Part shown: positions 1-30,779 of the stretch, piece by piece
Layout of the letters: each line of letters starts with the position of its first letter
How positions within the stretch are numbered: position 1 is the first letter of the stretch
DNA from: Trichosphaerium sp. ATCC 40318
Taxonomy: Eukaryota > Protista > Tubulinea
DNA: 64,000 nucleotides
Assembly (NCBI GenBank): GCA_038496445.1
Contig: JALMLS010000143.1
Span: 62,001-126,000 of the forward strand
Direction of reading: 5' to 3'
The notes under the pieces: model-generated
What the model was told of the DNA's origin: nothing
The model's database searches: none
Seen by the model: the letters and a program-made list of their open reading frames with translations, nothing else
Translations under genes and position numbers: made by a program

Positions 1-295
1 ATGATCACACTACAAGGGAAATAGTGATCAATTTGGCCAGCTGGTCAAGTCCTATTGTACAGATAGGCGGTTCAAAAATGGAACATGACACTTCTTGTTG
101 GTTGGTTTTACTACACCCTCAACTGCTTTATTCTGTATAAGTGTGGAGCCCTTACTCCCAAGGTTTTTTACAATTGCAACTGAATTGCTTCTCACAGGGA
201 CAGGAAAATAACCTAATAAATTTGTGACAGTTTTTTTTGTGATTTTTCATGACGACTCCTTTGGCGGATACGCTTTTAGATAGTTTCCGAAATTG

Positions 296-546
296 GATTT
301 CGAGAATCTTTGAGACGAAAAATGTGAAAAAAAAAATTTGCGATAGCAAATTTCAATTCGTTTATGCTGGGAAAGTACTAAAAGGTTAAAGCAATTTTTG
401 TTTGTTGGTTGGTTTATTCGATTAGGCAAGCTTAATTCAGGCGCAGTTCGCGTTACATTGTAGTACAACACAAGTCTAAAACTTGGATCTGCCCTGTCAA
501 AGCACATTTTTTTTCACATTTTTTCGTCTCAAAGATTCTCGAAATC
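296..546. repeat. Inverted repeat pair (~45 bp arms, ~160 bp spacer), MITE-like
   Basis: gatttcgagaatctttgagacgaaaaatgtgaaaaaaa (296-) is the near-perfect reverse complement of ttttttcacattttttcgtctcaaagattctcgaaatc (ending 546); no clear TSD. Confidence 0.6.
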
Positions 547-28055: not shown

Positions 28056-30779
28056 TCACTCTTCGACATCGGTAGAACCAACCCACGATATTTCCTCTTT
28101 AATCTTATCTACCAAATCCTAAAAAAAATATTGTAAATACCACTGATTTTTTTCATCGTTGTTGGCTGAGAGGTTTTCTTTTGGGTTGGCGTCATACAAC
28201 GGAGTTTCTCGACTCATTCAAGTTAAACTGTATCTTGAAACATTGACAGTAGGCGCCACACAGCAAACTACAATGTTTTGAAGTTCATTCAATCTGGTCC
28301 TGGATCCATTCGAGGATCTGAAAGGGATACACCCAGATTGAATGCCCTTCAAATAGTATTTGTTGTGAAGTGCCCGCTGACAAGGTGTCAAGATGCAGTT
28401 TAAGTTGTATGAGTCGGGAAACTCCGCTGTGTACGGCCATGTACCACAATGCCACAAAAAATTAAAAAGGTATGTATTACGCCCAACCCAAAAGAAAGCC
28501 TTATATAAGACAAACCACGTGAGTACGTACAATAGGTAATGTTTTCAAGTCCCAGTTACGTTCTTTATTCGTTTTAGCTATGAACTCTATGCACATATCA
28601 TTCAAAGTTCTGAAACCGACTTGAACATTATATTCTATCAGACTATTTGTGAAAGCTAAACAAAGAGGCCACGTGTTAGTGTTACGGCGTTAATAGAAAG
28701 GTTTGGCTTTCTTTCAAAAAAAATACCTATATAGAGCGTGCTACCATCATCTTTCCATGCTATACCACTTATTCTGTTCGCTTGAGATAACTGAATAGAT
28801 TTATGTCTCCAAGAACCGACCTCAACGAAATGGAGTCGATTACTGTCGTCACCATACACAAGCACTATTAAAAACAAGAAATGATTAGCAAGGAGATACA
28901 TATAGCAAATTAAGGTTTCTCTTCATGAAAAAAACGTACATGGCACTCTAGGATTAGGGCAACAAGCGATACTACGAACTGCGCTTCTTTGCTTTAAAAA
29001 AACCAGTTAAGATCAGGTTACAGAATAAATGAATATCGTACGTCATATTGAGCTTCTGTGTGCCCTGTGTCAAAATTGAGTATTGCAGCGATGCCACCGT
29101 CAGTGCTATGAGAGTAAGGTTAATAAGACAGGTAAAATACAAATGAACAATAAACAATACAAGCTTTCAAGTTAAAATTTCTTCCTGCGTTGTAGTAAAT
29201 TAATTAAACCTTACCCAATACTACAAAAAGGTGTCCCTGGAATCCATGATCCCATCATACTAAATATTTAGTTAATTGGTAACTTTAGCTAACATTACTA
29301 AAATAGAAATAATGTTCATAAGCCCATCACCTCGATTCGTAGCTGTGTTTACTGTTAAATCCTGTAAAAGTTCTTCCTTCAATTACGTTCCACGTTCCTA
29401 CTGGTCCTTCTTTAAGCCACATCTTATCGACATGTAGGCTATCTACTGAAGCCATCTATAAAAATAATTGTCAAACAAACATAGAAAAAAAATCACGTGA
29501 TGGATGCTTGGATTTTTGTTAATTTGGACAAAAAGCGTACCATGTACGATTTGTACTTGCCAGTACCGAAAGTTATATTGTTAACATTTTTTCTAACGTA
29601 TATATCTTCAAGCCTTTCAACCTCTAATCCCTTTGAGCCCTTTTTTACTTCAAACACTAACAACGAAAGTGAGTTTTATTAGTCCAAAGTAATAAAAATA
29701 AAAAAGTAGTGTTCGAAGCTCTTTCACTCCCACAAGTGAAGTAGAAGGAGGGTTTTTTGTAAACCAAACCTTTAGGAAATAAAGAAAGGCAAAAGAAAAC
29801 GTGCATCCAATATTTCCGCCGTTACAAGACAGGTACATGAAAAGTCGAGGCGCGTCAGTATCAATGCCAGACATACGAAATTTTACACCATTTATTTGAC
29901 CTGTACGACTAAAGTTTTCAACTTCTTCAGAGTTATATATTACCCTAAGTATTATTAACAAGTTTTTAAAACAATAGTACAAAAAACAAGTATTTGAAAT
30001 GAAACAAAAGAGACAACTTTCTTGTTCAATGTAATTCACTTAATTTCCGGTTTTTTCTTATCAACAAACAAGCCTGCGTACTTGGAGTCATGCTCAGTGA
30101 TTATGACGAAATGAGAATGACTAGCTACGCCTATAAAACCATATCTCGCTGTAATAGTTACAACAGACTTAAGAGGCGTTGGTACTTCAACTTTCTATGT
30201 TTTTGTCAATAATGAAACACCTTTTTCTCTACGTAGAGACGGTCGATAGTACCTCTTGTGTTGCCAAGTTAACCTTCTTCAAACATGTTGGTACACGCCA
30301 TGGTGCATCTTCATTTTTTTTTCCCTCGTACCAACGAAATACAAGTGCCTGTAGTCTATAGAAAAGCTTAACAAATAGATAGATATTTATGGAGATTAAT
30401 CAAAAAAGCGCTAACAGTCTGGTACATACCTGTGGAGAAGTGTAATAGATCACGTAGTTGACTATGGGATATAGCAGAGACGAAAGGGTACGTCGCTCGA
30501 GGTGTTATTTTTATATTATTTGGTGAGTCAGTAAATACTGTAAACTGGCGTGAATCGAGTTTTTTAGGCGGTGCAGGACTATTCAAACTTATTTTCAGTA
30601 TTTTTTTGTGTTTTAGTTCAAATAACGCACGGTTCCTCTGTAAGTTGTACTTGACCTTCTCCAAGTGTAAGTGTAGCAATACCACTTGTTGCTTCCTCTG
30701 TAGAAGATGGAACTGCAGCCATTTTACGACGGCGTTGTCTTGGTGCCTTTTGTGGGTGTTTTGATGCTTTGCTACCCAT
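28056..30779 (-). CDS. WD40/beta-propeller-like protein with C-terminal SOCS/BC-box (cullin-RING substrate receptor-like), multi-exon
   Basis: Start MGSKASKHPQKAPRQRRRK; propeller-like exons (ISGIAWKDDGSTLYI); BC-box FRTLNDMCIEFIAK then cullin box LPI|DLVDKIKEEI across a 412-nt intron (28119-28530). Confidence 0.7.
28171..28501. ncRNA. Long imperfect intronic hairpin (candidate miRNA/hpRNA precursor or foldback element)
   Basis: 28171-28316 is an imperfect reverse complement of 28325-28501 (e.g. ttcttttgggttgg/ccaacccaaaagaa; ggagtttctcgactcat/atgagtcgggaaactcc; cattcaatctgg/ccagattgaatg). The inverted repeat is certain; an RNA function is not. Confidence 0.55.

Follow-up and report, generated by a model that had tools for sequence, protein, structure and literature searches.

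The 331-nt imperfect hairpin at positions 28171-28501 of the window, by which we mean the whole 64,000-nt stretch of Trichosphaerium sp. ATCC 40318 DNA analysed here, is best explained as an old, non-autonomous, MITE-like foldback DNA element that landed in a pre-existing short intron. We give this reading a probability of about three in four. The hairpin belongs to a dispersed family whose copies share termini and have unrelated flanks, and it is an insertion relative to the intron at the same position of a paralogous gene. An earlier note on this DNA had proposed an intronic miRNA or hpRNA gene, with an aged foldback transposon as the alternative. It is the alternative that the dispersed family, the shared termini and the paralogue's empty 52-nt intron support.

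Structure of the hairpin and its host intron

We analyzed the hairpin by a repeat search and by folding both strands. The repeat search found three collinear pairs of inverted-repeat arms: 28171-28189/28483-28501 (19 nt, 95% complementary), 28187-28267/28359-28439 (81 nt, 78%), and 28277-28297/28333-28353 (21 nt, 90%). Together they form an imperfect hairpin of ~105 bp. As RNA, the + strand of the enclosing 412-nt interval (28119-28530) folds to -179.9 kcal/mol, against -94.2 +/- 6.4 kcal/mol for its shuffles (z = -13.5), and none of 100 shuffles equals it. The - strand of the same interval folds to -162.1 kcal/mol (z = -11.3). Folded alone, the + strand of 28171-28501 has a minimum free energy (MFE) of -170.2 kcal/mol, with 105 long-range pairs, 10 G-U pairs, and longest perfect runs of 19, 18, and 16 bp. 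The corresponding values for the - strand are -149.8 kcal/mol, 100 long-range pairs, 4 G-U pairs, and runs of 15, 13, and 8 bp. In 37-61 windows of 21 nt, 18 or more positions are paired. The MFE structure includes a one-sided bulge (~28436-28472) and a small apical GGAUCC/GGAUCU stem. The earlier note had described the foldback, the bulge, the apical stem, and a slight excess of wobble differences for the + strand, and all of these were borne out.

The hairpin and the part of the host gene that surrounds it are as follows.

28171-28501, no strand: whole foldback, 100-105 long-range pairs; z -13.5 (+) and -11.3 (-) for the enclosing 412-nt intron
28531-28656, - strand: penultimate coding exon of the host gene, ending ..NWDLKTLPI; 71% nucleotide identity to the paralogue exon
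28119-28530, - strand: intron of the host gene, 412 nt; 5' splice site GTACGT at 28530, 3' splice site a T-run plus AG at 28119; the reading frame runs on across it
28056-28118, - strand: last coding exon of the host gene, DLVDKIKEEISWVGSTDVEE, then stop

The frame of the host gene runs from ..NWDLKTLPI across the intron to DLVDKIKEE and on to the stop codon. The intron length given in the earlier note holds, and the frame and the splice sites support it. The note's figure of ~45 nt for a typical intron does not hold, as the neighboring introns are about 50-70 nt. Between the splice sites, the hairpin leaves 29 and 52 nt unpaired, and the T-run of the 3' splice site lies outside the helix. We were unable to uphold the label of SOCS-box gene given to the host. 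Searched singly against Pfam, the exons gave no significant SOCS_box match, the motif being split by the intron, and produced only sub-threshold matches to BACK_BPM_SPOP (E values of 0.058 and 0.0055).

A paralogue has the same intron without the hairpin

The best support for an insertion at this locus comes from a paralogue of the host gene (L075), which the same contig carries at a distance of about 117 kb. At the identical codon position, the paralogue has a 52-nt intron bounded by GT..AG, which is followed by the same GATTTGG as in the host gene. Since the paralogue shares the intron position and has only 52 nt there, the hairpin is an insertion relative to the paralogous intron. The empty site is that of a paralogue, not an allele.

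The same comparison bears on two other origins. An introner-type element would have made the intron by its own insertion, bringing or co-opting splice sites, and the element does fill most of the intron both here and in the gene that holds the related copies C48 and C210. It apparently does so at a third locus as well (C328), where only splice-site motifs were available. However, the paralogue's intron without the element refutes this origin at the window locus. Additionally, a variable stretch of 9 to 52 nt separates the element end from the splice site, which means that the splice sites are not supplied by the element. We therefore regard an introner as very improbable. The hairpin could also have been inherited along with the introns of a gene family, a candidate that we rejected: the window flanks match no other locus, and the true paralogue lacks the element.

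A dispersed family of foldback elements

Both arms of the hairpin are members of a dispersed repeat with about 20-29 loci in the 70-Mb genome, at 67-84% identity. A genome-wide search with the hairpin as query returned arm homologues of 70-83% identity from about ten further contigs. Searches using two relatives as queries gave further loci, and a terminal-motif search added one. We then built a profile (R1) from 20 aligned arms and ran it over the whole genome, which gave at least 43 arm matches. These fall at ~20 independent loci at E < 1e-4 and at up to ~29 loci at E < 0.01, a count that should be taken as a minimum, since scoring covered 150 of the first-look candidates. The profile and the alignments divide the window copy into the following parts.

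28189-28299, + strand: A-type arm (profile R1 match C19:90189-90299, 88.4 bits; alignments to the dispersed family)
28300-28332, no strand: apical loop with small GGATCC/GGATCT stem (fold and alignments)
28333-28435, - strand: B-type arm, a mosaic with A-type stretches (profile R1 match C19:90333-90435, 88.4 bits; alignments)
28436-28472, no strand: one-sided bulge between the B-arm family terminus and the basal stem (fold and alignments)
28171-28198, no strand: basal stem, left half; 28171-28189 lies beyond the family terminus, and its sequence is found at no other locus
28473-28501: basal stem, right half, which repeats the left junction in inverted form (19 nt of flank and ~9 nt of element end; repeat search, alignments, and flank test)

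We compared 3-kb loci by all-against-all BLAST to determine whether the surroundings of the copies are related. The flanks of 14 loci are unrelated, with the exception of two duplicated groups. In one group, C48 and C210 are diverged duplicates of a single locus. In the other, C328, C321, and C280 are copies of one locus, and ~12-14 kb from each there is a further element copy with an internal deletion. The unrelated flanks indicate that the family spread by insertion and not by duplication of a gene family. The SSU rRNA in this genome, a separate observation, is ~2650 nt long and is found near many contig ends.

Complete foldbacks are present at no fewer than six loci, namely C2, C48/C210, C328/C321/C280, C78, C92, and C138, the last from two opposed arm matches in the profile search. 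They have a common layout of an A-type arm, a middle of ~70 nt, and a B-type arm. The family termini, CT(G/A)(G/C)CTCCGTCATACAGCGGAG, occur at both ends of the C2, C48, C328, C78, and C92 copies and also at solo arms, and the window copy's own termini have diverged from them. The first 18 nt of the family terminus can form a tiny hairpin alone. Two subterminal blocks of ~20 nt each are better conserved within the family, at ~85% identity. Partial copies include solo A arms with the middle (C254, C129, and C80), solo B arms (C170 and C30), and internally deleted elements (C87, C328b, and C280b). Overall, the family elements are 250-330 bp, non-coding, and AT-rich.

The same set of differences separates the A from the B arm in all copies, with ~87% complementarity between the two consensus sequences. 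Because these differences are constant, the imperfect hairpin is ancestral to the family, and not a perfect palindrome that decayed at the window locus. Furthermore, the terminal variant, CTGG or CTAC, is identical at both ends within a copy, as it should be for ends recognized by a single transposase.

We also considered an inverted duplication of a gene fragment specific to this locus, the classical origin of young plant miRNA genes, in which case the single-arm matches elsewhere would be the target genes. The two arms share an open frame over ~25 codons, and several of the genomic matches first looked like single arms, both of which fit such an origin. However, complete foldbacks with both arm types and the shared termini are present at other loci, and the A and B types predate dispersal. 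A 104-aa ORF inside the hairpin element has no Pfam match, and no reading frame is consistent across the family copies. No ORF of more than 71 aa contains a solo arm, and several frames there are open to an equal extent. The complete foldbacks elsewhere, together with solo arms that lack long ORFs, effectively refute this origin, and we give it next to no weight.

Marks of transposition

Direct repeats of 3 bp flank the copies C2 (AAT), C48 (TTT), and C328 (CTA), at one common offset when the element is extended by one base at each end. Such a target-site duplication (TSD) is therefore seen in three of the five independent full relatives, and re-pairing the left and right flanks among copies in 44 derangements never gave three matches, whatever the offset or length. 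No 3-bp TSD was seen at C78, at C92, or at the window copy, where the earlier note had likewise reported none. A CACGTG-containing motif is common to the C2 and C48 flanks, and some flanks are T-rich. The shared motif means that the true ends may be further out and the TSDs perhaps misplaced, and we treat the 3-bp duplications as a suggestive, but not secure, mark of transposition. The earlier note had held that many dispersed, TSD-flanked copies would make the hairpin a MITE. This is largely what we find: dispersal is plain at about 20-29 loci, and duplications flank three of five relatives and are absent from two.

We searched the genome by terminal motif, by full element, and by profile, all of which give lower bounds, and these searches found no autonomous element with the family termini. 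With a TSD at only some relatives and no autonomous partner found, no superfamily can be named.

Like MITEs of the Tourist and Stowaway type and human Made1, the family is small, non-coding, and AT-rich, with long imperfect terminal inverted repeats (TIRs) that fold into one hairpin. Its copies are likewise dispersed among unrelated flanks, some with short target duplications, and frequently intronic. Unlike those MITEs, the family has tens of copies, and nearly all of each element consists of its arms, which are of two constantly differing types. It also differs in having no autonomous partner or superfamily so far found and in the restriction of the 3-bp TSD to three of five relatives. The low copy number counts against the MITE reading. 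In its TIRs, dispersal, lack of coding capacity, small size, and empty paralogous site, the element behaves as a MITE by most tests.

Under this reading, a foldback transposon with two ~110-nt imperfect inverted arms, A and B, round a short middle inserted into an intron of ~50-80 nt. It probably moved by cut and paste using a transposase supplied in trans, as the 3-bp target duplications of some relatives suggest. The host would have tolerated the insertion because it is spliced out, the element simply leaving with the intron, and the window copy would now be decaying neutrally.

Selection on the hairpin as RNA

We looked for selection on the hairpin as RNA in the folded alignment, in arm identities, in wobble counts, and in strand preference, and found no sign of it, each of the four being null or marginal. 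RNAalifold, applied to eight full copies, gave 31 consensus pairs with a compensatory change in only one of them and a covariation term of +0.61. The wobble classes are symmetric, at 4 versus 2 in the consensus and about equal within each copy. Of the eight copies, four fold more stably as the A-first strand and four as the B-first strand. No block of the family is conserved beyond about 85% among the aligned copies.

The duplicated locus represented by C48 and C210 allows a comparison with adjoining sequence. There, the element is 62-74% identical between duplicates, versus 88-94% for the adjoining sequences, which are exons, as seen from their conserved peptides and from splice sites of the form GTGAGT and T-run-AG. 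The C48/C210 element, which is also intronic, evolves like DNA without constraint.

Small-RNA readings

The genome has the genes for RNA interference, as the earlier note had suggested should be checked for Dicer/Drosha-like and Argonaute proteins. A Piwi domain is encoded on C37, RNase III domains occur in pairs on C23, C12, and C34, and RdRP sequences are present at five or more loci. With these genes present, a ~100-bp imperfect duplex in an intron could, if expressed, give rise to siRNAs. The copy-number and target checks that the earlier note had proposed for the arms returned the 20-29 or so loci described above and, as complementary sequences, family copies only. A permissive DNA search, which is able to miss 20-nt matches, found no complementary site outside the family. 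Within the family, a 33-nt stretch of the window copy is 94% identical to the C2 copy. The only Rfam match was to MIR2593, at 31 bits versus a gathering score of 96 and equal on both strands, which is palindrome noise.

Pre-miRNAs in Amoebozoa are mostly 75-125 nt, and the rare ones of more than 200 nt are presumed young (PMC11014262). At 331 nt, the hairpin far exceeds the pre-miRNAs known from protists. It exceeds the plant limit as well. Plant miRNA criteria allow a precursor of about 300 nt or less. By length, by conservation of the duplex and structure, and by match to a curated family, the hairpin fails as a miRNA precursor. The intronic miRNA or hpRNA proposed in the earlier note is accordingly unsupported, in view of the dispersed arms, the lack of compensatory evolution and strand bias, the noise in Rfam, and the excessive length.

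Two known kinds of small-RNA locus are worth comparing. MITE-derived miRNA genes are established, both in humans, where hsa-mir-548 derives from Made1 (PMC1784062), and in plants, where MIR genes derive from transposable elements (PMC3086885). The window hairpin resembles them in being a palindromic transposon copy in an intron of a genome with Dicer, Argonaute, and RdRP genes. It is unlike them in length (331 nt, not ~80-120), in having no conserved miR/miR* block, and in that no target was found. The second kind comprises Drosophila hpRNA/endo-siRNA loci and the long-hairpin proto-MIR loci of plants. These usually come from, and are complementary to, specific target genes, and have dedicated transcripts. 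The window hairpin shares with them a long inverted repeat able to give 100 bp or more of imperfect dsRNA. However, it is a family repeat, and no complementary gene was detected.

A MITE hairpin could still have been exapted here and diced into siRNAs or young miRNA-like species that silence family copies or the genes carrying them. Its transcript would be part of the host pre-mRNA, the B-first strand, or would come from an antisense promoter of its own on the + strand, which has the more stable fold. The long stem, with perfect runs of 15-19 bp and its 37-61 well-paired 21-nt windows, would suit this, as would the Piwi-domain protein, the several paired RNase III domains, and the RdRP loci. 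The human and plant precedents (PMC1784062, PMC3086885) and the long, presumably young amoebozoan miRNAs (PMC11014262) also favor it, as do the lengthening of the window hairpin at its base and apex, described below, and the 94% match to C2, which would make trans pairing within the family possible. Against it, compensatory evolution and strand bias are both absent, conservation goes no higher than ~85% in any block, and the element outpaces the neighboring exons in the C48/C210 locus. In addition, complementary sites are confined to the family, the Rfam match is noise, and transposable-element hairpins are known to be miscalled as miRNAs (PMC3495686). On balance, we consider exaptation unlikely. 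A more specific form, in which the window copy was captured as an intronic long-hairpin precursor whose Dicer products act in trans on the ~20-30 family copies, several of them intronic, strikes us as a little less likely still.

The palindrome at the window locus has probably lengthened

The window copy differs from its relatives in two respects, at the base and at the apex. At the base, it has a stem of 19-27 bp outside the family termini that is not found in the other copies. We scored flank complementarity beyond the family termini, and the window copy, with a score of 33 that none of 500 shuffles reached, was alone in being significant (p = 0.18-0.94 for the other full copies). The 19 nt to the left of the element, together with ~9 nt of the element end, recur inverted 31 nt past the right end. 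With the left junction, this inverted copy makes the basal stem, and the intervening stretch is the "bulge." We also considered that the outer stem was a piece of another repeat. This was rejected, as a pattern search of the genome found the basal-stem sequence nowhere else, with matches at the control rate.

At the apex, the window B arm carries an A-type CATTCAATCTGG stretch, unlike other B arms. With this stretch on the B side, the stem is longer and the loop is halved compared with the ~70-nt middle of the family. The identity of the arms within the window copy is 0.71, compared with ~0.61 between arms of different copies. Neither the basal stem nor the higher identity of arms within this copy is predicted by pure neutral decay.

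Palindromes can extend by hairpin-primed or template-switch repair. The window copy is consistent with such a process, as it alone has the inverted left junction past its right end and as one arm appears to have been overwritten by the other at its apex, although the mechanism can be read only from the final sequence. We therefore believe that, after insertion, the palindrome likely grew at both base and apex through hairpin-templated repair or template switching. Alternatively, the extension may have been selected because it improved the fold, to the benefit of splicing or of dsRNA.

One form of such selection would act on splicing. If the arms loop out the 331-nt insert, the intron would act like one of ~80 nt, and the basal stem would have been fixed as an improvement. 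Introns here are 50-70 nt, and the unpaired 29 and 52 nt, with the T-run of the 3' splice site left outside the helix, agree with this. The C48/C210 copy is intronic too and fills most of its intron, with 20 and 44 nt left over, and it has the same orientation relative to its host gene as the window copy. The C328 copy is apparently intronic as well, judging from motifs in its flanks that by eye resemble splice sites. The window basal stem is locus-specific and non-random, which also fits. However, this amounts to two or three intronic cases, and there are no compensatory changes among copies. The minus-strand MFE structure also draws the 5' splice site into a weak helix, which could hinder splicing, and any neutral insertion in a compact genome is expected to survive in introns. 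It is thus quite improbable, in our view, that splicing selection has kept the fold. Under the neutral foldback insertion that we prefer, the hairpin, by leaving an unpaired length close to that of a normal intron, probably makes the insertion tolerable among introns of 50-70 nt.

Significance

The window hairpin belongs to an apparently uncatalogued, low-copy, MITE-like family and offers a clean comparison between an insertion and an empty intron in two paralogues. It also serves as a warning: a long intronic hairpin of this genome may resemble a miRNA or hpRNA precursor and yet be a foldback-transposon copy, so copy number needs to be checked before any small-RNA claim is made. If the window copy had nevertheless been captured as a precursor, it would represent a transposon-born regulatory network caught early, in a poorly studied protist lineage. 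We offer two hypotheses from this locus: that foldback structure may let large insertions survive amid very short introns, and that palindromes may grow into their own flanks after insertion.

The host intron and a host-gene paralogue

In the minimum-free-energy fold of the minus-strand RNA of the host intron (window 28119-28530), the opening ~12 nt, which hold the 5' splice site, are predicted to pair weakly with a stretch that precedes the 3' splice site by ~15-30 nt. By this predicted pairing, the hairpin stack would reach the ends of the intron. A paralogue of the host gene lies outside the window on the same contig.

L075:1400-1900 (genome assembly G000, C19:~206830-207330), opposite orientation to the host gene: host-gene paralogue

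The exon structure of the two genes is identical, and the paralogue's introns are 52 nt and 57 nt long. Its C-terminal tail, DLELLANECVQKLHYKTVT, is unlike that of the host gene.

The window also contains a second inverted repeat with A/T runs, whose 43-nt arms are 86% complementary and spaced 171 nt apart.

Window 293-335 and 507-549: arms of the second inverted repeat

Other copies of the foldback family

Two copies of the foldback family reside in a duplicated locus.

C48:~258.7-261.9k (L005 / L028): foldback locus
C210:~21.3-24.5k (L029): foldback locus

Across 2.8 kb these loci are 82.6% identical; their exons match at 88-94% and their non-coding parts at 45-79%. They are either an old duplicate pair, of segmental or whole-genome origin, or haplotypes that have diverged very far. 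A decayed foldback occupies the same intron in both loci, each with its own copy.

Directly outside the family termini, a AACACGTGTT-like motif that contains CACGTG flanks the C2 copy at both ends and the C48/C210 copy at one end. One subfamily may have a longer terminus that includes this motif; alternatively, the motif may be a favoured target.

L003:1352-1373 and 1625-1645: CACGTG-containing motif
L005:1603-1640: CACGTG-containing motif
L029:1395-1413: CACGTG-containing motif

At C328 and C280 (L025, L027, L037, L038), the foldback adjoins arrays with a period of ~138 nt and many staggered self-alignments, which are probably one-repeat-exon LRR arrays. The same flanks recur 12-14 kb away, where an internal deletion has left only ~90 nt of the foldback.

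rDNA and RNAi genes of the assembly

The SSU rRNA genes are strongly expanded (~2650 nt), and at least 10 copies each lie within a few kb of a contig end, which suggests that the rDNA units are subtelomeric or otherwise end-located.

Contigs C481, C410, C581, C75, C6, C34, C592, C46, C176 and C177: SSU rRNA near contig end

The assembly holds at least five RdRP-domain loci (C29, C81, C93 and two on C6). Clear evidence of a Piwi domain, by contrast, comes from just one locus (C37), and C549 gives a second, weak match. If the domain search is representative, the RNAi set of this organism would be RdRP-rich and Argonaute-poor.
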